A stretch of 64,000 nt of DNA. Origin: Marsupella aquatica (lineage: Eukaryota > Plantae > Marchantiophyta). Below are positions 6,084 through 23,087 of this stretch, one piece after another. How positions within the stretch are numbered: position 1 is the stretch's first letter; every line of letters starts with the position of its first letter. The stretch lies in NCBI GenBank assembly GCA_973895155.1, contig OZ316898.1, positions 17,598,752-17,662,751 on the forward strand. The letters run 5' to 3'. The position numbers and the translations under genes are program-made. The notes beneath the pieces are model-generated. The model did not search any database, was not told the origin of the DNA, and saw nothing but the letters and a program-made list of their open reading frames with translations.

Positions 6084-9010
6084 ACAGGTATGGTGAGAAC
6101 CCCGTCGAGTAGCGTTACATACAGACAAGTATAGACTCGAGAATGTAGCATGCTACCGTATAATCGCAGTACTCCAGCGACTAATCCTCTCTGGTCAGAT
6201 TGGTCAGCAGTAGACGAATTCTTCCACCTCTTTAGGTTGAGGCGGTGATCGTAGTAGCCTATTGGGCCCCTTTGTGGACGTGCTTTAGTCCGGTCCTTCC
6301 ATGGTAGCCGCCAACTTGATTGGCCTGGAATTGCACATCTTGCAAGTATGGGGTCGGACTGACCCACTCAGAATTGAAGATAGGGAATTTCTCATATATT
6401 CTGTTAGTATAATTTGTGTTTATCTATAGTAGCCAATAGGGTACTGAGGAGGTTCTGTATTTCGGGAGTCGGGTGGAAATGGGAGTCGGGCGGAATGTTT
6501 TGAACTCTTCGGTCTTGTTGGTTTCTTCACCTAGAAAAAGTATCCCCAAAACAACGGTTCTCCAGATCTGCACCGCTATAGTATCACCGATTGCTAGGTG
6601 CTGTCTACGAGAGAATGCTAAACATGCTTTCGCGATCATGTCGATTGGCAGCGCCGAAGGCAGTCCCTTATGAAGCAAACAAAACTTCAATACTGTAATC
6701 CCTGAGTGGTTGCTTCGCCTGTACAGCATCTTGTCTGTCACGCTGTCGGTTGTGGTTTCACATTATGAGAAACTTTGGCACGAAGTCAAATCCTGAAAGT
6801 CTATAGATTACTCTGTTGGGAGTACGTCTCTATAAATGCTATCCACTAGCGCGTGACAAGAGTCGTTAGAATCTGAAGGAATGTGACAGATATGACAGAG
6901 TTTTGGGAGTTGCATACGAATCATGTGAACTTCTCTGTCCCTAAACAGTATTGTCGACCATATGTTATAGGATTTTGATAGTTAGATGAGGTTCGGTACT
7001 AGATTCGCGTTTTAGATTCAAAGAAGAGCCGATTCATATGATTGCTAAGCTCACTCTAATATCTACTTATCGAGCATGTCTTGCAGTCGCAAAAGTGTTC
7101 ACTTTGGGCAGGATGTGTATAGCCTTTTGGTCGTAGTTTTATGCTTAGTAACTGAAGCTGTACCTTAGATGGTTGGAATCAGTTACATTTGGTCCAACAA
7201 AATATGGGAGGTTTTGTTTCTCCAAGGCTTCACATTACTTCGGTGTTTGGCACGAGATTGCAAGCCTGAACACGAAGTTATGGTGCTGCCATGCCATCAC
7301 CCAGTCGGGCTCAAACGTTGGCACTTTAGGTGACGAGCCCAAGCAGAGCGAATGGAAACAAGTGCACAACGTCAAGTAGAAAACATGATTCTGTTGCTAC
7401 AGTCTATTAGGTGATTCAGAGTATGACAATATAGTGTTACTCTTGCTAAAAACCTTAGGTTGTTCACCTGCTGAAAAAGTAGGAGATGTTGTGTCGTTCG
7501 GTACAGTGCTCTCTTGTATATATTTTAGCTTGTGATTTTGTCCTCTTGACTTACGGGTACAGTAGGAGGTTGAAAAGTCTGAGACTTTTGTGAGGCAACA
7601 TAGCTCGTTAGAACTTGGCTTAAAATTTGAACTTCTGCACTAGCTGTAGATTTATGCAAACATGGGCTCTACTGAACGTCACTGAGAACTCGGTTTACCT
7701 TAAACTGACAAGAAAACTTTGAAGGGATCTTATTCAGCATGATCTATCTGCATGTTTCGTTTAGAAGCTCCTACGATAGTTGATGAGTCGATAGATGCAG
7801 TCCTATTTCCTGTTCAGTATCATAGGCCAGTTTTGAAATTTTTCTTAAGTTTTTGGTCTTTGAGTATTACGCTATTCAGTCGCCAGGCAGGCAGTTAATA
7901 GAATGACTTGAGAAGCACCAAATTTTACCTACAGACCCTACCGCTGTCCCCAGTCTAGCCGCAGATGTACATTATTATATCATGAAGTGGAAAGTTTTGA
8001 GAGCGTACATGTCCAAATTAATGTGGATCGAGGCCGGTATCTCCTAACGTTCTTGGACTTTTAAGTTTTGATTACATGTCACAGGCTTACTTTAGATCGT
8101 TCTCTTTGGACTTTGCTGCAGATTCCGGCATTCTAAATCAATGGAAGTCCCGGCTGGTTTCGGCTTCGTTGGACTGGAATCGGAACGCACGCTTTGATCT
8201 GAAGGGTTGAGCCACCACACGTCAAGGACGAATGTGGTGGAAAAACTGGAGGACTATCACCAGTCTCGTCAGGGGCTGCGTACGCATGTAAGGAGTACAC
8301 AAAGAATTGTAGAACAGAAAAATGTGTGTAGTTGACCGAGTATGCCACTATCCATGTAGGTACCTGTGCTGAGAACATACCCTAGTGTCGAGTAATAGAT
8401 TAAGAGACGGGCCCTTCTAGATTTCCCGATATGGTTGGATAGGAATCATTCTTTTCATGATTTTGTACGTATTTCACTTCCGTCTCTGCTTGCTGCAGTC
8501 TGTTGATTACTTCTGATTGCCTCAGATGTCTCAAATCCCGGGGAAGATATGGTACCGATTGCGCTCTGTAATATGTAGTGTGCGTTTTGCAATTGCTCAA
8601 GGAAACCTGTTTTGTAACGTTCATTCGAATAAATTTCCTAAGGATTGTCTTCCATGGGTCCTTGTCCGTTGGATTCGCTGTACTGTTATCGTCTATTGGG
8701 TCTGTAGTTCTTGCGCTCATCCACCTTTTCGGGCTTCAAAGGATCTCGAAATCGTTTAACGATTGTGAGTGAAACCAGATCAGATTTTGGAGCAGGAATA
8801 CCAAATTCAGGTACGATAACGGAAACTGTCACATGGGAAAAGTTGGAATATATACCAGGAATCACGAGAATCGAGTATTGACGAATGATTATTCCGAAGG
8901 CCAGACGAATGAATACTGCCAGAACTCAGTAATAATTTATTATTCGTGAGAAGTACGCACTGTGGAATATAGAATATAGCATGCCCATCCTGGAACATTG
9001 CTTTACTTTT

Positions 9011-9207
9011 TGTCCGGTAGTGATATGTAATTGGACAAAATTAGAGAGTAAAACTAGTATACATATTAAATGCAAATGAGATAAAATAATATAAGTAAAG
9101 TACATAACTTTGTGTCCGGTAGTGATATGTAATTGGACAAAATTAGAGAGTAAAACTAGTATACATATTAAATGTGAATGAGATAAAATAATATAAATAA
9201 AGTACAT
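9011..9207. repeat. Two-copy 102-bp tandem repeat
   Basis: The unit tgtccggtagtgatatgtaattggacaaaattagagag...aaagtacata starts at 9011 and at 9113. Confidence 0.9.
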
Positions 9208-9385
9208 ACAAATAAAAGCACAGTGACCAATGGGAAGTACAATTAAATTTTATGACACAAAGATCTTACCAGTTGTGCACTTTCTTCAATGTGTTTTATT
9301 AGTGACATGCATTTCAATAAAAATCATAAACTTTAAAGGAATAAAAACCATAAACTTAGGAAAGAAAGTCCTGAAGGGAACTTAA

Positions 9386-9398
9386 ACCGCCACTGTCC
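9386..9398 (+). repeat. Left TIR of the Kolobok-type element
   Basis: ACCGCCACTGTCC preceded by TTAA; exact reverse complement of 19351-19363. Confidence 0.92.
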
Positions 9399-9936
9399 CT
9401 CGCCAAAATGTGGATCCACCACATTGCTTTATATAGGCAAAACTTCAGGTCCGGGCATTCACGACTGTTTCAGCCCAGGTAGCTTTTTGGCCCGGTTAGC
9501 TGCCCAGCTGTCCCAGTGACCTTACTTGTATAGAGGGCGAGATGAAGCCTAGGTGGGGCAAGTCCTCTCGTCCATCCTGCGCTGAGTGGGCGATCCTTTT
9601 TCTCCTCCCATGCTGCGCGTGCATCCACAGCAGAATCGATCGATCATTTTCTTCCCCCGATGTTGCGCGACTGTTCACAGCTGCCTCTGTTTCTGGCTAT
9701 GGTTGTGTCGTCGGTAGGAGCTGCCTCTGTTTCTCTCTATTCATAGCTACTGCCACCAAAGTCCAAGCGACTTTACATGAATCGAGCAGATGAAGGCGGC
9801 TAAGCCCTGATCGAGCTTTTCAACTTCTGTAGGAGCATTAACTAATCTGGCGTTGTTCATTTCGTGCACACACATGTGCTGGTAATATGATTTGTGAAGT
9901 ATGCAGTTCATTGTTTTGGCTTTGTAGATCATGTAG

Positions 9937-10042
9937 AGCGGAGTGACTTCTTATCAGTTTCGGGATCGATTCGCCCCAACAGAATGTGAAGCGGAGTGAC
10001 CTCTTATCAGTTCAGGGATCAATTCACCCCAACAGAATGTGA
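9937..10042. repeat. Two-copy 53-bp tandem repeat inside the transposon
   Basis: agcggagtgac(t/c)tcttatcagtt..gggatc.attc.ccccaacagaatgtga starts at 9937 and at 9990. Confidence 0.85.
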
Positions 10043-11268
10043 AATCCTTGTTGGCTGGAGCGCATTTCAAGTTTGTGTTGATTTTCCTATTAGCTCCCAC
10101 AATATTTCGAAGTAGTGCTCGCTGAGGAAATCACACTTGCTGCTATCATGCTCAAGGCAGTCAAAGGAAGTGAAGCACGAATCGAAAAGGAATGACCAAT
10201 CGAAGAATTATATACTGCCTTCAATCGATCGCAAGTTAATTACATCACAAAGCTCTGTTCTAAATTTTCAAATATGCTTCCAACATAAGCCAAATAGAAA
10301 CCTCCATTCACCACGTCTAAGTGAATCGACGTCCTTCATGGTAAAAAATGTTTCGCAATCCCTATGCCGAGCACAAGAGTCATCCTTTTCTTGTAAGTCA
10401 TCACAGATAAATGAATTATAGTACATATTCGAACGCCGATGTATCGAGATCCCAATTGGAATGTGACACTGTGATTGAGTTTGACGTTCGTAGACATGGC
10501 ATTGTTCTTACCAGACAGTGTACAATTGAAACGGAAAGAGCGACACTACCGATAGAAGTGAAATTGATAGAAATTATGGAACTTCTCAATCGTCAACTTC
10601 CTGATGTCCCCAAGTAGTAGAGCATTGCTGCAAAGATTCTCTGGCACATTAGAGGTGAGGAAGAGCAACAGCCAATGTGAAGTGGAAGGCACAAGAGCTT
10701 CAGCTCCAGTGAACTCCGATCCTCTTTATAATGAGAACATGTCATTCTCCCATTCTGCGAGAACTACTTGGCCACTCCTTGCAAGGGTCTTTTGCATACG
10801 TGTGGACGAGTGCATCACCAAATCGGGAATGCTAGGAATCAATCTGAGGCCAATCACTCTCAAATACTTGGCCTCCCATCCCGGCGCCCATCCAATGAAG
10901 CTCACTTACGTTGCGCTACAATGTTTAGTGACGCTCACTTACTGGTGCTCATTATAGAATGCCTTGCCCATGCCTGTTGTGGCCCATGCCTGTTGTGAAT
11001 GGCCATTCACAACTCACACAGGTTGTGTATGTACATAAATTCTCTGCCTCTATTGCTCCTCACTTTTTCGGCTTACGAACATTGCTTCTCACTTCTTTTG
11101 GTTTACGACTTGGGAAGAAGGGCATAGTTCAAGTTCTAGTACACTTGCAACTCGCTTTCTTGTTCCCTTTATCGTTCGCTACCCCTCTCTTTCTGTTGAG
11201 TCCGACGCTCCAGCAAGAAGGGTGTGTTGATCTAGTGTTGGAAGAAGGGTGTGTTCAACTAGTACTGC

Positions 11269-11592
11269 TGCGGTTCACATTTTTTCGTTCGGCAGTTCAG
11301 TTGTTGTCATTCCTTCAAAGACTTACCTGGGTTATTGACGGCCGGGGGGGGGGGGTTATTTCAGTTGCGGTTCAATTTTTTTCGTTCGGCAGTTCAGTTG
11401 TTGTCATTCCTTCAGAGACTTACCTGGGTTATTGACGGGGGTTATTTCAGTTGCGATTCAAATTTTTTTCATTCGGCACTTCAGTTGCTGTCATTCCTTC
11501 ATACACTTACCTGGGTTATTGACCGGGGGGGTTATTTCAGTTGCTGTCATTCCTTCAGAGACTTACTTGGGTTATTGACCGGGGGGTTATTG
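11269..11592. repeat. ~85-95-bp tandem repeat (3 full copies plus 1 partial) upstream of the KolX-like gene
   Basis: Recurrent unit ...ttcagttg(t/c)tgtcattccttca.a.acttacctgggttattgac.gggggttatttcagtt. Confidence 0.9.
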
Positions 11593-11610
11593 ATCACCCT
11601 TGCAATCAGC

Positions 11611-12354
11611 ATGAATACTTCCAGGTTTATTCAATCTTGCATGCCTAGAATCTTAAAATTCTCTTCCCATTTACCCAAGAACTTGAATTATGCATGTGTA
11701 AAACTTGGTAGTTAACCTTCGTTTTCTTCTTGGTCATGTGTACGTTGCCGTGTGGCCATTTTGCATGCATATACTTTGCTTACCTTTGCAAATATGTGCA
11801 TTTGTTTCCAATTGACTTTCCTTCATGCACACATAATACTTGCTTGTTCTTCTCAATTTGGTGTAAAATGTAACCTCCATCAAGCAACAATTACCTGGCT
11901 TACTTTTCTAGGGATACTAACTACACATTTTGAATTCCCTATATTTTGAAGGAGCACTGAACATCAAAATAGGCCGGCGGAACTTATCTCCTATGGAGAT
12001 GACATATATCGTTTATCATGGCCAGTTCCTCCACCAGGGCGTCGGAAATTCTGACTTTTCAGACATGCAGACATAGTTGCCAGGTTCTCTGAGTTTTGTA
12101 GAGCAATAGACGACAACCTTGAGGCCCTCAACTCTGCCCAGGTTCTTTCTCCTGCAACAGCTCAAGATTTTCATATGTGTGCGGCATGGGCATACACTGA
12201 AACAGTTCCTCGTCGACAGAGGTATGTTGTGTATCGGAAACTAGCATTTGTTGCTAGCTTTGCGGAAAGAACACCTTTCCCAACAGCAGTCACAGCTGCA
12301 GTGCAGTCCACCTGGGAGCTACCAGGCGAACAACATGTGGGTTTTCGATTTTAG
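11611..12354 (+). pseudogene. KolX-like second gene (P2X7 intracellular-tail-like C-terminal motif); exons 11611-11624, 11952-12354; one in-frame TGA at 12052
   Basis: Manual translation: MNTSR|STEHQNRPAELISYGDDIYRLSWPVPPPGRRKF*LFRHADIVARFSEFC...RRQRYVVYRKLAFVASFAERTPFPTAVTAAVQSTWELPGEQHVGFRF*. The end fits the RYxxYR...RxPxPxxVxxxIxxxFP...GxYxGF signature of KolX/P2X7-C. Splice phases match; exon 1 is tentative. Confidence 0.7.
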
Positions 12355-13023
12355 GTTTCTACTTTGTATTTTCTTTTCTTTTCATCAATGTTGTTTCGTC
12401 ATGTGAGTTATTCTTTCATGGGTTCTCAGTTTCACCAGTTTTGTTCATATTTGTTTCACATGTGCCTCCTTTTCTTTCCCAACTGCAAGTATAAACAACC
12501 TGGGAGTTGCTCAGCAAAGACCATGTCGGTGTATGCCTTTAGTCTTCATCCATGTTAACTTATTGTTTCAAGGTTTCTTTGTTCTACTATACTATAATTT
12601 CATTTTTTTTCTTGGCATGTGCCTCTTTTCTCCCAATTGCACTGCAGAACCCATGGGAATTAGGAGGCAATTTAATGTATCTCTATTTGTTTATTTCCTA
12701 GTATTATCATTGTATGGGTTCTTTGTGCTACTTGTTTTTTGTGTTTGTTTGGCTTGTGCCTCCTTCCCCCTCCTTTGGGTTGGAACTCCTACTGGATGGC
12801 AGCATGGGGGTTCAATTCCCCTATGGAGTATTGTTAAATTATGATAAATATTTGCAATGTATGAGCTAAGTTATTTTGCAATGCAATGCCATGCATGTTG
12901 CTCTTCTATTATAGGTAGAGCACGTATAGATACTTGGTCCATAGCCATTTCCCAAACTTGTAATAGGGCAACACAACTCACCACTTGCATTGATGGTGCT
13001 AAAATAAAATAATGTATCAAGTA

Positions 13024-16000
13024 TCACATATCATAATCTACACCTCTTCCAAATATGATATGGGCCACGTCTTTCTTCCACCTGATGCTTCTAGGAACTA
13101 GGTCACGAACCTTTGATGTGCGCTGACGTGTACATGTATTACTAGGCTGTCTTGTTTGAACTCGTACCACCTCTCGACCAATGTTTTCATTCCAGCACAT
13201 TGCAGCACATGCCATCTGAGCTTCATGGGTCATGGAAAAATGAATTCTCTTCATAGCATATTTGTTGATGTTTCCATGAAATGTTTCACTGAAGAAATTT
13301 TCTCAGGCTCTAGTGTAAAAACGAACATTGATTGCAGTGACGTTCTTATGCAACCATTGCTTCAAAGCTCTATGTGTAGCGCCCCCTACAAAATCCACAA
13401 GAATCCATATTTGAAAATATTATAAATCCGAAAAGATTAGGTAACAATCCAAAAAAATTATTTCTCTCATACACAAATTACAATTGAACCAAGTTTAATC
13501 AATAGTAGCATTTAACTTACCTTCAACATAGTATGGCATATAAGTTGCACCTTCCTCACAACACTTGCGAGGAAGGAAATCTTTGCAAGGTTCATGGTTA
13601 CCAGCCCAATGATCAGCTACCGTGATGATCTCCCTAGCCAACCTAGTAGCATCATCATTTCCCTTGTAAGTAGTCAAAACAATATAATTCAAGAGTTAGT
13701 TTAGTTCAAATAATGAAACAATTGAATTGCTTGAATTAATTTGAATGTAACTGAATACCATAGTTACCAGTCTACCTTTCTTTTGCATTGCAACAACAAT
13801 AGTAGAACCAACTCTTCAACTTATCACCAAGTTGTTTCTCTGTCAATTCTGGATACTTCAATTGCCTCCTGGTATGCAATGTGATGTCCTCCTCTGAAAG
13901 CCCTTTATGTCTTCCAATGCGGCGCACCAAGTCTGTCTTATTTCCTGTATGCCTCAATAGGTGGTCCTTGCACCAATCTGACAACACTCGAATAGTGAAT
14001 CTGCCCAATTCCTGCAAGGATATAGCACAATCGATCCCACCAGCAGGTGTTGTTTCTTTCACATTTGCTAGCTCTTTGTTAAACTGCTTCAAAAGATTCT
14101 TGCATTTGTGCCATAGATCCTTCTGGTTATCAATATTGAACTCATGAAGAATAGCATCAACTGTGTTGTTATCATCGTGAACAACCTCGTTAATTGTAAC
14201 TCCAACATCTTGAAGATGTTGTAGGGCACGACGAACACCAATTGCCTCAATAGCGCCAGAATTTCCAGCCTCAACGCGATTGATTGTAACAAGCTCTACT
14301 ACCTTACTAGTAGCCACGTCTATTACGGGAACAGTGCCATGATATCCAGAACGAGATGAGTCCCAACGACAATCCACATATAAAATCATTGGAGTGGAAC
14401 CTACAATTATCATAAATTCACAAAATATTTAGAAAGCAACATTTACATGCATGCATTAACAACCTAGAATATGTAGTAAATTGATAAACTAATCAAGCAA
14501 CTTACTAGCTAGTTAACAAATGTTTCACTAGAAGGAAGATTGACATACCATCTCTTTCTGCTAAGCTTTGTTGCAACCTTTGTTTCTTATGATTCCAGAC
14601 TTGCAGTACTGCTCCAATCCATCCAATGTCTCTTCTGGCTCCATTTTGAAATCGAAACCAGTGGGTGTTTCTTGGGACATGGATCTCAATGTGAGAAAAT
14701 AGTTCACATATGATGTTGTGTGTTAGACCAGCAGAGAGAGCAGAGTGATAAATTAGTCCAGTGATTGCAGGAACACCTGTAATCATGAATAAAACAAGAT
14801 TTGACTTAAAACCTTTTTGTTTCAAAATGCATAATATTAAATTAAAAAAAGTACAATAGTATAAACAAATAGTATTAATTTGAGCAGATGACATGTACCT
14901 CTATGAAGTTCATTCTCTCCAGTCATGAAAGATTGTGTATGCCCTTTTGGGCACTTCAACTTCAATATCCACAACTGATGGTGTGTCACTATGTCATCAA
15001 CCAAATACTTATCGACACAACCTTCAACACGACAATTCACACAAAATTCCTGGAAAAATTCATGGACCTTGCTTTTTTGCCAAAAAGCATACTCCACTAG
15101 GCTCTGAGGATCTGACTGGGTTGTATTTTCTTGAGATGATGGCTCGTACTCAAAATCCAAACTGGAGTCAACTTCTACTTGCTCAGAGGAAGTAGATGCC
15201 TTGAAAAACACACAATAATTAGTAAGCTATGTAGAGATGCAATTAATTTAAAACATATAATTATAACTATGAATTGATGCAAATGACAAAGACAACAATG
15301 TGCAAAAATACAAATGATACCTGAGTGACATTCTCTTCAAACCCAGAATCCATGAGAACCATATTGTCTAATCCAAATGTTGTTGGATCAGCCACTTCCA
15401 GCAAACGAATGGCTCCATCCTCATTTGATATCTGTTAAGGGTTTAGGGTGCAGTATTTGTTTCTTAGTTGAAGGTACAGTTTCCATAAAATGAATGCATT
15501 ACCTATGTAAAGTAAAGTTCCTGATTAATTTTGCATCACTTGTCAATTTAGATCTGTTCCATGAATAAAGAAAAATAATCCCTTCCCCAGACCCCTAACC
15601 AACCTCTACAAATACCATCTTCAATGCTCAAATGTTTTTGACACCCACTAAACAAAGTATGGCAATTCATAGAAAAGATAGCGCAAAACCTGTCTGATCA
15701 CTAAACGCCATGGCTAGGGCCAAAGAAGTCAAAGAAATAAGCTAAGCATGATATTAGGGTTTAGGGTTTAGGTTAAAAAAAATTCCATGAAACATTACAT
15801 TAGGGAAAAAACTATTGTAACCTCATTCTATTGTATGCAGCTTGGGCAAGGGTGATGACTCAAAAGTTAGTCCTTGTGCTATCATTATTGAAAATTATTC
15901 TTGTTAGCATATTATGTACAGTATTTGACGTTAAAATTTAATCCTTTTGTTATCATCATATTTTGTCATTAATTTGATGTTTGCAAACAAAAAAATTACA

Positions 16001-17225
16001 GTCTGTGCATTATATTGTACATGTATAACATGTACAAAAATTACATGTATGTGCATTATTTTATGGAACAAATATAACAAAGAACAAAAGGATCTTAAAA
16101 ACCCTAAACAAAGTTACCTGGGAATCAGACATCAAAGGGCCATCTTCCATGTTTATGTTGGAATGCGGAATGTGTTGTGCATCCTCCTCCCCAGACTCAA
16201 TGTGGTCAGATACACTAGTGTTCAAGTCTGAATCATCTTGCTCTTCGTCTGAAGGTGATGCCTCATCAGGAATGGATTTGTCATTATTTGGATTGGATGA
16301 TGATGCACCGCAAGATGGCTGCAAGACAAAAATACAAACATGGGTAGACAATACTAAATCATGATGTACCAAAGACAAAACCTCTAAATTTTGGATAACC
16401 CTAATTGTTTTAATACGTCAAAAAGGAGAGATGCTGAAAGAGATTACTCGCATGAAAACCTAGAAAAACAAGGATTAGTGAAATAAAGCAATCTTGAGAC
16501 TAGAATGAGAAATGATATAAAAAATACCCTGGCAATGATCCCAAATGTTCCCAAGTCATCTTCATCAGCAAGGTGTTTATCATTTATCCACCCAAAGTCA
16601 TTAGGGCCCTCACATGCTGGTACTTCCTCTTGAGATCGTTGACACCGACCGCTAATAGCAGCAGAGATTTGCATGGACATACCATCCATGAGCCAAGCCA
16701 TCAACTTCCCATGGGACCATTTGGTGGCATCCTGTAAGGCATGGTATATACATATATGGGTTCCAGGAAGCCTACATCAAAGACTGCCCCCAGCTTGGTG
16801 ATAATCCCTCCTGCCTGGTTGACGTACCATTTGTCCTACTCTGGCAACCAAAACCATATTGACAACAACAAGTTTTTGCTAATTAGATGTCCTTATATTT
16901 GTGTAGTACCTCAAACATCATGCTTCTTCAAGTCTAGAATGAATATCATGCTTCTTCAAGTCTAGAATGCACTTGTGGATGAAAATGCAAGAGTTTAGTT
17001 AGCAGGTTCATACCTTCCTTCACAACATTGCAAATGCCTTGTATCTGACCCAAATGAGTGCCTTCCTACCGGGCAAGTCCTAAAACAAAAGTGGGCCGTC
17101 TCCCTCACCCAATCTGCATTTGACCCGCATGAGTGGCCTGACTTTTGGCAGGTTCTAAAACCGAAATGGCCAGACTATCATCCTCTACGACGGGTGAAGG
17201 CTAGTTCCCTTTCCATGGCCATCAT
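13024..17225 (-). pseudogene. Kolobok-type DDE transposase, ~830 aa, 9 exons (17225-17014, 16840-16528, 16318-16118, 15431-15321, 15199-14899, 14776-14549, 14400-13776, 13662-13521, 13385-13024)
   Basis: Motifs: CxxC...CPKGH; VDCRWDSSRSGYHGT (D1); NSGAIEAIG; VVHDD (D2); KDLWHKCKN; DHWAGNH..C; SETFHGNINKYAMKRIHF..AMCWNEN (E). GT-AG junctions are phase-compatible except 13776/13662. In-frame stops lie at 17175-17180, ~16779 and 13303. The 5' exons are less certain. Confidence 0.85.
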
Positions 17226-19350
17226 CGTTATCAATTGTGACATGAAGCCGCTACTGTGTGATAAACCATGCCATCCCGCCCCTACCCTGTACGTTTTGTG
17301 TAAACTGAGAATTGCACCATACAACTAGCCGGTTGTCGTTCAATGTAAACGATCTTGCCCCTACCATGTCATTTTGTGTACACCAAGGATTGCACCAAAG
17401 AACTAGCCGGCTCATCTAAGTGTTGAAGTGCATGGCGCAAGGAAGGAAAAGCATCGCCGATTCGCGGTTCTCACAAACATTGTGTTTCTTAGGCAAGATG
17501 GACAGAGAAGATTACAATAGTTTGGCTACTCTGCTGTGCCGATTGCTTTCCCCTATTGCAAAGGCAGGATACTGAGTACGAATCAAAGTTTCATACTCAG
17601 TACTCTGCTCACCAACATACTAATATCATGCTTTTAGACAATGTTGCGGCCCTAGTAAAGCTGTCGTATCTTCTGCGCAGCAATGTGCGAACATCATTGT
17701 TGCATGTAAATCAACAAAGAAGTAAATCAAACATGATGTTGCCAGTAATGACTTGAGAGAGTGACAGCTTGACCTGCAATCGTAGCTTATAATAGAGCAA
17801 TTGATATAGTTGGTGGCTCATCCCAGTAGCAGTTGGGCTTTGCTTGTCGCGTTTTGCATTTTGTGTCTCCAGAAAGATACAGAATCGCATGGCAAGTTGT
17901 CAGTTGCCTTTCAATTTTATGAAGATTGATTACACCAAAATAACCGTGATACTGAAATACAGTTGTCAGCCGGGTTCAGCTGAGTCCGGAACCGCTTTCT
18001 CCGAGAATTACTGTGGGATTGGACATGGTGGCCTAGTTTCGGAATTGGTACTGCCAGATTCAAAATTGTGTGAAGCTCTTCCGGATCTGGCATGGTGGCT
18101 CTGGTTTGGGATTCCAACTCGCTTCTTCCGTGACGGCGCCTCATTTGGAAGTGTTCAAATCTTTGTGGGCTGCATCTTGGTTTGGCATCTGGATTACTAG
18201 TTCCGAGAATTGTAGTTATCTCGTTGACGAAACGTTGGATTTGGTATAACACCCGGTGTAACATGCAGCTCGATTTGGTATGGTGGCTCTGTTCGGGAAT
18301 TACCTGCGTGCTCCAAGACGCATCAGTTGGAACATTCAAATCTCTGGCACACGGTACCATTTGGCAGTAGTGTGGAAGTTGTTTAGGATTCGGGAGATTG
18401 GCAGAACTCCCCCGTCATATCTCTGCTGTAAAAACTCTCAGGTTGGCGACATTTACATGCATGCTTTTCTGACTGTAATAACCACCAACACTACATTCGA
18501 AGAGGATGTTCAAGCCGGATCTGTAATCAGGGTTGTTTAGGTCTTTGCATATGTAGAAAGAGCGTCGTTCTTGTGCTCACATTAGTGGAAATCAGGCAGG
18601 AATAAGGATGACTGAGAAGTTCTTTGGAGACATGAACGCGAGGGTTATTTTTTTGATGGGGAAATGGTCAATCCAATGTGTTTTGGGTGCTGTTACTCAC
18701 TGCGGTACAGCCATCCGCAGAACATAATAACAAGGGATCAACAGAGATCCATCTGCGCTAGTTTCATATAGTCGGCTTTAGAAGGCTGCCATTCTGATGA
18801 TCTAATTGCTTGGATCAATCACCCAACAGGTCAAGAAACTTTTTATTTTCCCTTCATTCAGGTTCTGGATATGCTCAGAAGCGATGTTGAACAAAAAAAG
18901 GCGAAGTCCTTGTGTGCGCCGGCCTCCTATGTCAATTGCTTTCGTCGGCCGACTATGTCAATGACTAAAAATATGCCAAAGGATGAGGCGATTTTGGTTG
19001 CGTTAGTTCTTGTGTACTTAGAGAACATGTCGATTAGGCCATTCATGCAGAAGAGCACACGCACAAACCCATGTCGATTGAGTGTGTTTTTTCAAGGCCA
19101 ACACACTCACAAACGTTCATGGCTATGGCAGCATGTTTTGCAGCCCCTAAACTCACGAACCATGATACCTACGCATTCACACGAACAAACGACTGACGGA
19201 AAGTCCAACACACTTTTTGGACCACTACTGACCCACCTACTATTGCGGACCACTGGGGCTATGGCAGGGACGCAGCGCCTTGGCTGCCTTGGCTGGGCAG
19301 GTCTGGAAGAATGAGCCTTGACCGGCGCTTGGTGCTAGCACTAGTTATAT

Positions 19351-19363
19351 GGACAGTGGCGGT
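19351..19363 (-). repeat. Right TIR of the Kolobok-type element
   Basis: GGACAGTGGCGGT followed by TTAA. Confidence 0.92.
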
Positions 19364-19373
19364 TTAAGATAGG

Positions 19374-19911
19374 CACTTTCTTCAATGTGTCTTACTAGCG
19401 ACACTCATTTCAATAAAAATCATAACCTTTAAAGGAATAAAAACCATAAACTTAGGAAAGAAAGTCATGAAGGGAACTTAAGATAAGATGTGTTGACATT
19501 ACTTAGAATGATTCCTCTCACTCATGAGAATACTTAACCATAAACTTAGGAAAGAAAGTCATGAACGGAACTTAAGACACTTAGAATCATTCCTATCACT
19601 CATGATAATACTTAACCATAAACTTAGGAACTCATGAGAATACTTAACCATAAACTTAGGATGTGTTGACATTACTTAGAATGATTCCTCTCACTCATGA
19701 GAATACTTAACACTTAGAATCATTCCTCTCACTCATGAGAATACTTAACCATAAACTTAGGAAAGAAAGTCATGAAGGGAACTTCAGACAGGATGTGTTG
19801 ACATTACTTAGAATCACACCATAAACTTAGGAAAGAAAGTCATGAAGGGAACTTCACACAGGATGTGTTGACATTACTTAGAATCATTCCTCTCACTCAT
19901 GAGAATACTTA
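19374..19911. repeat. Modular AT-rich minisatellite (host target locus of the transposon)
   Basis: Shuffled modules accataaacttaggaaagaaagtcatgaagggaactt, gatgtgttgacattacttagaat and attcctctcactcatgagaatacttaa, each present 4-6 times. The first ~108 bp match the left flank at 9276-9385. Confidence 0.9.
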
Positions 19912-22083: not shown

Positions 22084-23087
22084 GGGGTTACAGCCCATTA
22101 TCCTCAAGCGGGGATGAGGTACCAAGCCTAAGCCCCCAAGTTCACTTTTATGCAAAAAAAATTGTATCCTAGGTACTGTAGCTGTTTAAGTGTACTCATT
22201 TAAATTTGAGAATCCCCAAGCCAGACTGACACAGTTTAGGTGGACTTACATGCTGTGTAATGCTTCAAAACTTTACACAAACTAACAAACAGAAACCGGG
22301 ACAGAAACTCACAACCGGCTTCACAAAGGCGGTGACATTGGGGTGACCTGGGAATGGAGGGGGTTCCCATTGAATTTGGGACCCCTTAAGCTATTATAGT
22401 CCATAATGCTCCAACAACAGGACCTTACTACAATTAAAGGCTTGAGAGATTTTAGTTATTACTAATTGTAATAAAAGTAAAGGGGAATACTCTTAAACCC
22501 GCTCTTAAACCCCCACTAGCCAACTGAAGACAAAAACTTGGTTACACATATTTCACCATTTTTAGTACTTTTTCCCAAAATTGTGGAGCAAAGTCTCACA
22601 GCAGAGGAAAGGAATGTGAAAAAGTGAGAAGTTGTGAAAACTCCTCCTTTTATATGGCCAGTGGTGATTTAAGGAGGGAATTGTCTCCAAGAACGTACTG
22701 AAAAGTACAAAGGGAGAAATAGTCTCCAACAATGTACTGAGTATGTGCAAAGGGAAAATCACTAAGGGCCTTAAGGTACTGTACAATGTGAGAAATATAC
22801 AAAGGAAAAATCATTAATATGGCGTCTCAAAGCTGAGAAATTAAGTATGGTAGCATAAAGGAATGATCTTAACTTTTTCATAAGGTTGTGTAAAACTTTT
22901 TTTTGTTTTATCTTTCACCAGCCTCTAGTGTGACTCATGATAATGGCGGGGATAATGGCATAAGACCAATCCTTATGGCAAAAAGTTATGGACTATGAAT
23001 TTAGTAGTGGACCATAATTTTTTGTGTCCTTAACCCATGATAACTAAGGAGTTAAAGTCCATCAAACACATTGTCTTGAAACCTGGC

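Follow-up and report, generated by a model that had tools for sequence, protein, structure and literature searches.

A disabled transposon of probable Kolobok affinity, inserted at TTAA in a satellite array of the liverwort Marsupella aquatica

The stretch of DNA analysed here, referred to as the window, comprises 64,000 nt of the genome of Marsupella aquatica (assembly GCA_973895155.1, contig OZ316898.1, positions 17,598,752 to 17,662,751 of the forward strand). Positions 9386 to 19363 are occupied by an element of 9,978 bp with two convergent genes. A first-pass annotation, made from the letters alone, had described it as a complete two-gene DNA transposon of the Kolobok superfamily. The element is delimited by the following features:

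9382-9385, no strand: left target-site duplication (TSD) TTAA; present only once in a neighbouring satellite unit
9386-9398, plus strand: left terminal inverted repeat (TIR), 13 bp, ACCGCCACTGTCC; its terminus ACCNCCAST is common to Riccia and Calypogeia elements
19351-19363, minus strand: right TIR, 13 bp, perfect complement of the left TIR
19364-19367, no strand: right TSD, TTAA, abutting the right TIR

With the adjoining bases included, CTTAAACCGCCACTGTCC forms an 18-nt perfect inverted repeat (9381-9398 and, as complement, 19351-19368), and the TIRs enclose 9,952 nt. A scan of the window for the TIR next to TTAA, allowing up to three mismatches, returned four occurrences versus 0.11 expected; the two additional matches are both ends of a 160-bp miniature inverted-repeat transposable element (MITE) described below. 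The DNA that received the insertion is a tandem repeat of 118-bp units (a satellite, 9005-9385 and 19368-19800). For an empty-site test the two flanks were joined computationally and compared with the window. The next satellite unit to the right (19406-19485) is 97.5% identical, runs uninterrupted across the insertion point and contains a single TTAA (19478-19481); this neighbouring unit serves as a paralogous empty site. Further evidence came from contigs of four public sequencing runs; the sequence is present under two organism labels from two studies. The flanks were covered 10-50 times more deeply than the interior of the element, the 118-bp repeat being very abundant, and in 10-21 contigs per run the satellite and not the element directly follows position 9385. 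These contigs and the empty unit together demonstrate the boundary 9385/9386 and the TTAA target independently of the TIRs. The perfect 13-bp TIRs and the TTAA on both sides that had been annotated at first are borne out by these data.

A TA duplication with termini one nucleotide longer is formally equivalent to the TTAA reading. This equivalence had been noted in the first-pass annotation and attributed to the palindromic target CTTAAG; the equivalence stands, but it follows from TTAA itself and applies to any TTAA element. Under the TTAA reading the ends are AC...GT, of which the first and last bases fit the pattern RR...YY and the second and penultimate do not, whereas the ends under the equivalent TA reading, AA...TT, do fit. 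All nine liverwort ends behave in the same way. The empty site, taken alone, is formally compatible with a 3-bp TTA duplication and unequal ends.

The larger gene is a transposase gene of eight exons on the minus strand. All borders are GT-AG, and the phases are consistent through exon 6:

16857-16528, minus strand: exon 1, N-terminal helical domain; tblastx matches to Calypogeia locus L002 and Riccia locus L008
16318-16118, minus strand: exon 2, acidic linker; placed by splice sites alone
15431-15321, minus strand: exon 3; tblastx match to Calypogeia L002
15199-14899, minus strand: exon 4, acidic stretch followed by a Cys/His zinc-finger-like region, C..C...C..GH; homology to liverwort proteins or loci
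14776-14549, minus strand: exon 5, helical region ahead of the catalytic core; homology, aligned to Kol0 profiles
14400-13776, minus strand: exon 6, catalytic D, second D, DLWH and SAP-like insertion; homology to liverwort proteins or loci
13662-13521, minus strand: exon 7, DHWAGNHEPC; compared with Calypogeia L002 and Riccia L001
13385-13024, minus strand: exon 8, catalytic E in SETFH, WNEN and the stop codon (13026-13024); homology to liverwort proteins or loci

Each exon served as a separate query, and the continuity of the frame was followed by exon-length arithmetic. Homology to liverwort proteins or loci supports exons 1 and 3-8 and is lacking for exon 2. The model amounts to 766 codons and not to the protein of about 830 residues that had been estimated before. 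All motifs that had been quoted for a spliced transposase of the Asp-Asp-Glu (DDE) type were recovered on the minus strand: VDCRWDS (14380-14351), HDD (14179-14171), DLWH (14119-14108), SETFH..INKYAMKRIHF (13296-13237) and WNEN (13194-13177). The catalytic residues D (14374-14372), D (14176-14174) and E (13287-13285) are present. In 13 streptophyte relatives the DLWH block reads KDLWHK.K, with K, H and K invariant and D and W nearly so. A SAP-like motif (approximately 14023-13907) reaches 21.8 bits with the Pfam SAP model, below the cut-off, and 25 bits in two relatives, above it. Apart from this sub-threshold match, Pfam searches with single exons found nothing.

The second gene lies on the opposite strand:

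11950-12354, plus strand: KolX-like partner gene; conserved open reading frame (ORF) 12055-12351, stop codon 12352-12354

As had been annotated, it points toward the transposase gene (ORF 12055-12354), and it ends 669 nt short of the transposase stop in a tail-to-tail arrangement. Homology extends upstream of the ORF across an in-frame TGA (12052-12054). The partner matches Riccia loci L001, L006 and L007 in tblastn (E 1e-11 to 1e-16), and both in the window and in these three Riccia elements it is located downstream of the transposase gene and convergent with it. Four liverwort ORFs, with X at one stop, were compared with six cnidarian KolX proteins by hhalign. The alignment covers the last 44 columns only (P 7e-6, score 40.3); shuffling the columns of the liverwort alignment 120 times gave scores of 12.0 +/- 2.2 (maximum 19.7), and the reversed alignment gave 15.2, which places the match about 13 standard deviations above the shuffles. 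The shared C-terminal pattern is R..(Y)R, ...R..(I/L/F)P....(I/V)(R/K/Q)..(F/W)....G..(Y/H/F)(V/A/T)GF. The Cys-rich N-terminal half of KolX, whose cytoplasmic-ballast domain has seven conserved Cys and two zinc sites, is absent from the partner, and the compact Riccia element L007 has no Cys-rich exon and no room or ORF for one. A word-based protein homologue search with the KolX-like ORF gave no match. Judged by these alignments, the partner appears KolX-like in its C-terminal module only and does not qualify as a canonical KolX. Of the KolX partner proposed earlier, the tail-to-tail layout and the KolX-like last 44 residues hold, while the canonical identity, for which a P2RX7_C match and the Cys cluster are missing, does not. 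In Riccia sorocarpa, a gene model with a P450 Pfam match (L001:13950-15491) overlaps the KolX-like ORF (15554-15039, minus strand); this model is probably a chimeric annotation.

Both genes of this copy are damaged. A premature TGA in exon 1 (16779-16777) falls within an N-terminal block conserved with Calypogeia and Riccia, and another in exon 8 (13305-13303) replaces the conserved Arg of YTRAR-ENF; with the TGA at 12052-12054 in the partner gene, all three premature stops are TGA. At position 13305 every contig of all four runs has G, which gives CGA (Arg) in other copies. The stop at 13305-13303 is thus confined to this copy or to the individual that was assembled. TGA in place of CGA is what decay of C to T at methylated CpG would produce in an element that is silenced. 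At the junction of exons 6 and 7 the frame is 1 nt short compared to the conserved phase-2 intron of Calypogeia L002 and Riccia L001, which probably represents a frameshift. Because of the three TGA stops and the probable frameshift, this copy cannot make either protein: it is structurally full-length but dead in both genes. The description as a complete transposon is valid for the structure and not for the coding competence.

In order to place the transposase, the core exon (213 residues) was compared by phmmer with 1.84 billion representative proteins, which resulted in 203 matches, 72 of them below 1e-10. Names were looked up for 30 of the 203. Among these 30, the stronger matches are from Calypogeia fissa, Riccia sorocarpa, Chara braunii and Closterium, together with unnamed metagenome proteins and one protein listed for Prorocentrum and Pyramimonas transcriptomes, and the tail (E 7e-6 to 3e-5) consists of proteins of Mytilus, Lineus and Actinostola; a further homologue search with the core exon added Riccia fluitans alone. 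The matches grade from proteins with DxRxDSSR...QKDLWHK to proteins with DGRCDSPG...TDRH...DVWH. The motifs of the tail proteins (DGRCDSPG, TDRH, Q(F/Y)DVWH..KS, NHLWWC and LE(V/N)(Y/F)H) are the blocks seen in Kolobok-1_XT, -1_BF and -1_NV of the published alignment (PMC9587614, Data S5). On the Actinostola contig the transposase is followed by an opposite-strand gene of 138 residues with Pfam P2RX7_C (PF20478; exons with E 5.5e-12 and 8e-5), and the pair is enclosed by long TTAA-flanked TIRs with 5'-AG termini. The P2RX7_C neighbour and the TTAA-flanked TIRs provide an independent check that the comparison proteins are Kol0. Alignment of 13 streptophyte with 9 Kol0-type proteins by hhalign yielded a probability of 99.9% and an E value of 2.7e-33 across 365 columns that start at the zinc-finger-like region and end past the catalytic E, and the sole large gap coincides with the site of the SAP insertion in the streptophyte proteins. 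The AlphaFold model of a Riccia relative, confident over the core (predicted local distance difference test, pLDDT, about 90 for residues 280-410), has the beta-beta-beta-alpha-beta-alpha-beta pattern of RNase H. Its best fold matches are the transposases of the P element, of the IS256 type and of Hermes (template modelling scores, TM-scores, 0.25-0.35), with integrases next. This is as expected, since the hAT/P/MuDR/Kolobok group shares the C/DxxH motif (PMC9587614). These data support the superfamily named in the first-pass annotation, and we assign a probability of about 0.9 to the view that the element is a cut-and-paste DNA transposon of the Kolobok superfamily, of a streptophyte lineage, present as a disabled copy at TTAA in the 118-bp satellite.

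Several points weigh against this view or against parts of it. The termini are 5'-AC...GT-3' and not the quoted RR...YY. The Kol0 identity of the comparison proteins derives from motifs and the KolX neighbour and not from named reference families. Pfam P2RX7_C does not match the partner ORFs of the window and of Riccia, even at E 10. The element was found in no RNA run, so that the exon model is without RNA support, and the frameshift call hinges on inferred splice sites. Finally, the sole Pfam signals in the relatives are borderline matches to PF20700 ('Mutator-like transposase') and MULE. They raise the question of a Mutator-like element (MULE), a reading that could also cite the IS256-type transposase among the best fold matches and the UniRef name of the Chara relative P0119 ('MULE transposase domain-containing'). 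The PF20700 matches of Chara and Closterium relatives range from E 3e-7 to 2e-3, with one above the cut-off; the Kolobok-type proteins with borderline or passing PF20700 matches include P0063, P0058, P0110, P0119 and P0145. PF10551 (MULE) stayed below the cut-off in every protein tested; an Atlas look-up gave only leads below 0.9, to PF20700 clusters. Kol0-type animal proteins with KolX neighbours, however, give the same borderline PF20700 and MULE matches, so that these are no argument against Kolobok; they are explained by the known distant kinship of Kolobok and MuDR. In addition, the TSD is TTAA instead of 8-11 bp, the TIRs are as short as 13 bp, and the Kol0 profile is matched with E 2.7e-33, all of which makes a Mutator-like element very improbable. 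The PF20700 and UniRef MULE names may nevertheless mislead automated classification of transposable elements. Even less credit is due to an element of the piggyBac type, the other TTAA-specific superfamily, although it has the TTAA duplication in its favour and some piggyBac families have Cys-poor KolX-like proteins (Kojima et al., PMC9587614). No exon or relative has a Pfam piggyBac transposase match, the termini are ACC...GGT and not CCC...GGG, the transposase has C/DxxH, and the fold was matched by P element, hAT and IS256 and not by piggyBac; the strong Kol0 homology in hhalign refutes this reading. PIF/Harbinger, a two-gene superfamily of plants, was also considered and rejected, as no Pfam match of that kind was found and the transposase is that of Kolobok. 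PIF/Harbinger elements have a 3-bp TAA/TTA TSD, a DDE_Tnp_4 transposase and a Myb-like partner.

The element belongs to a family with shared termini. Riccia elements L007 (9248-14698, 5.45 kb) and L006 (6880-15580, 8.7 kb) have TTAA on both sides and termini beginning ACC(C/A)CCA(G/C)T, and the right end of Calypogeia L002 shows the same arrangement, TTAA followed directly by ACCNCCAST. Across nine aligned ends, TAAA-C-CCA-T is invariant. No TTAA-flanked TIRs were found within the fetched flanks of Riccia L001 and L008, at the left end of Calypogeia L002 or in Chara L003. The window itself contains one further member:

22509-22668, plus strand: 160-bp MITE, non-autonomous relative that shares the terminus; flanked by TTAA (22505-22508 and 22669-22672)

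Its termini read ACCCCCACTAGCC and GGCCAGTGGTGAT. TTAA thus abuts both termini in the MITE as well as in Riccia L006 and L007. The MITE contains a TATAAAAGG box, which occurs about 15 nt inside the terminus in four of five transposase-proximal ends, covering three liverwort species:

L006:15525-15584, L007:14643-14702, L002:19595-19654 and window 22613-22672: ends with the TATAAAAGG box

The box is mutated in the 10-kb copy, where it reads TATAACTAG. By its sequence and position it looks like the TATA box of the transposase promoter, built into the end of the element; a bacterial promoter scan was uninformative. The four runs contain 517-819 family contigs each, at 88-100% identity and with a quarter at 99% or more, and these high-identity copies suggest recent amplification.

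Against this background, a domesticated host gene with incidental TIRs can be assigned only a very small probability, between those of the piggyBac and Mutator-like readings. Relatives in Riccia are indeed annotated as ordinary 'SAP domain-containing' proteins, but this copy is interrupted by stop codons, its TIRs are exact and lie between TTAA flanks, a paralogous site without the element exists, similar contigs number in the hundreds, and a MITE shares its ends. How the family came to liverworts was addressed by a maximum likelihood tree of 29 rows and 431 columns, built from the named or clearly Kol0-motif hits (about 170 other hits were left out) and without other Kolobok lineages for rooting. 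The streptophyte set is separated from the animal Kol0 set, seven sampled proteins, with 98% support in the Shimodaira-Hasegawa-like approximate likelihood-ratio test (SH-aLRT). Chara (99), Closterium (99) and the liverworts (83-90) form clades of their own, with the window and Calypogeia together (99); the relations among the clades are not resolved. Recent horizontal entry into liverworts from animals, protists or algae would account for the patchy distribution, with liverworts the only land plants among the named matches, for the one relative from dinoflagellate and prasinophyte transcriptomes, and for the occurrence of Kolobok otherwise mostly in animals and protists (PMC9587614). This scenario is unlikely, though less so than the other alternatives: each of the streptophyte clades is well supported and apart from animal Kol0, both liverwort classes carry the family (Jungermanniopsida with Calypogeia, Marchantiopsida with Riccia) at 40-58% protein identity, and the introns are plant-like GT-AG introns with phases conserved between genera. 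The separate clades of the liverwort, Chara and Closterium copies and the conserved intron phase favour long residence in streptophytes over recent transfer. Of the two origins left open at first, ancient or horizontally acquired, the evidence leans to the ancient one.

We consider it rather probable, with less confidence than for the superfamily itself, that the family represents a distinct Kolobok lineage whose residence in streptophytes predates land plants and which has had recent activity in liverworts. Such a lineage would be marked by a SAP insertion (DEK_C-like in Chara), a non-THAP N-terminus, the promoter-like TATAAAAGG box and a zinc-less KolX-like partner. Weak DEK_C matches were observed in Chara P0096, P0119 and P0087 at the position of the liverwort SAP motif. 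Judging from these matches, the lineage as a whole seems to carry a DNA-binding helical module at this point of the catalytic domain. The relative P0042 (891 residues) is listed for both Prorocentrum and Pyramimonas transcriptomes, which could be due to cross-contamination or a shared source; its N-terminal domain has a weak VapB-antitoxin-like match. Kolobok has been described from animals, fungi, chlorophytes, rhodophytes and protists, and a Klebsormidium family of another type is part of the published alignment (Kojima et al. 2022, PMC9587614). A literature search that combined Kolobok with liverwort, Marchantia or land plants yielded nothing beyond one general review and an automated count made in spinach, and no characterised land-plant Kolobok was found in the literature searched. 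This agrees with the first-pass remark that plant Kolobok elements are little described, and the land-plant host assumed there is supported as well (liverwort-type).

Like Kolobok-1_XT, -1_BF and -1_NV of the Kol0 lineage (Kapitonov and Jurka 2007; Kojima et al. 2022, PMC9587614), the element has a TTAA duplication, short TIRs and blocks that follow one another in the same order (zinc-finger-like region, D-x-R-x-DS, (T/H)D, D-x-W-H-x-x-K, H-x-x-C, E-x-(F/Y)-H), and its small tail-to-tail second gene has a C-terminus, YR...P...V..(I/V)(R/K/Q)..(F/W)....G..VGF, that aligns with KolX. Unlike Kol0, it carries the SAP-like helical motif, which is inserted after DLWH and ahead of the rest of the core, at a place that is a gap in Kol0 profiles; its N-terminus is a helical domain and not THAP, the first motif is DSSR and not DSPG, the partner has no seven-Cys zinc cluster and gives no P2RX7_C match, the termini read AC...GT, and the hosts are streptophytes. 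The group of Kolobok-1_OwFu, -16_CGi and -1_MyEd (PMC9587614, Data S5) has the blocks DARHGxRK, HDRN, NDxWHxxK, DHYxNxHxxC and VESFNN, to which DCRWDSSR, HDDN, KDLWHKCK, DHWAGNHEPC and SETFHG correspond in a comparison made by eye only, with no statistic. With the Cys-poor KolX-like piggyBac families (PMC9587614, Data S6) the element shares the TTAA target, the KolX C-terminal motif and the lack of most conserved cysteines, whereas their transposase is unrelated (piggyBac DDD type) and their termini are different. The P element, hAT (Hermes) and IS256/Mutator likewise have an RNase-H-like DDE core with a helical insertion domain and C/DxxH, but their TSDs are 8 bp (P, hAT) or 8-11 bp (Mutator), and there is no significant sequence match.

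We infer the following course for cutting, for the part played by the partner protein and for any activity at present. An intact eight-exon gene would encode a transposase of the DDE/RNase-H fold, which would bind the ACCNCCAST termini and excise the element. Reinsertion at TTAA would occur by a 4-bp staggered cut, and repair would lead to the TTAA duplication. The product of the convergent gene, with its KolX-like C-terminus, is assumed to be an accessory factor. This copy would be mobile only with transposase from other copies, of which there are many and in which Arg is retained at one of the codons broken here.

Catalogues of land-plant transposons centre on hAT, Mutator, CACTA, PIF/Harbinger, Tc1/mariner and Helitrons. 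They would be extended by one superfamily if liverworts have a Kolobok lineage specific for TTAA, probably as a new entry within a known superfamily and mechanism. Such a lineage would account for the Riccia and Chara gene models labelled 'SAP domain-containing' or 'MULE', and it shows from the plant side the KolX module from which vertebrates made the P2X7 tail. If the distinct streptophyte lineage is true, this would be the first characterised land-plant Kolobok, and the KolX C-terminal module captured by vertebrate P2X7 would be older and more widespread than animal Kol0 elements. Provided that there is an intact copy, an element native to bryophytes that targets TTAA and excises seamlessly could be tried as a tagging tool.

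No Pfam match and no similarity to Riccia or Calypogeia elements were found in 9400-11900 and 16900-19350, and these approximately 4.5 kb have no counterpart in the compact 5.45-kb Riccia element. In the four runs the left non-coding part had fewer matching contigs than 11800-15199, and it includes one repetitive feature:

11350-11591, no strand: internal tandem repeats of 87/56-bp units in the long non-coding left part

Shorter repeats of 32/38 bp follow in the right flank (19598-19749). A palindrome, AATGTGGATCCACCACATT, is located just inside the left TIR (9407-9425); its arm resembles the TIR core (CCACCAC), and by this resemblance it is a possible subterminal binding site.

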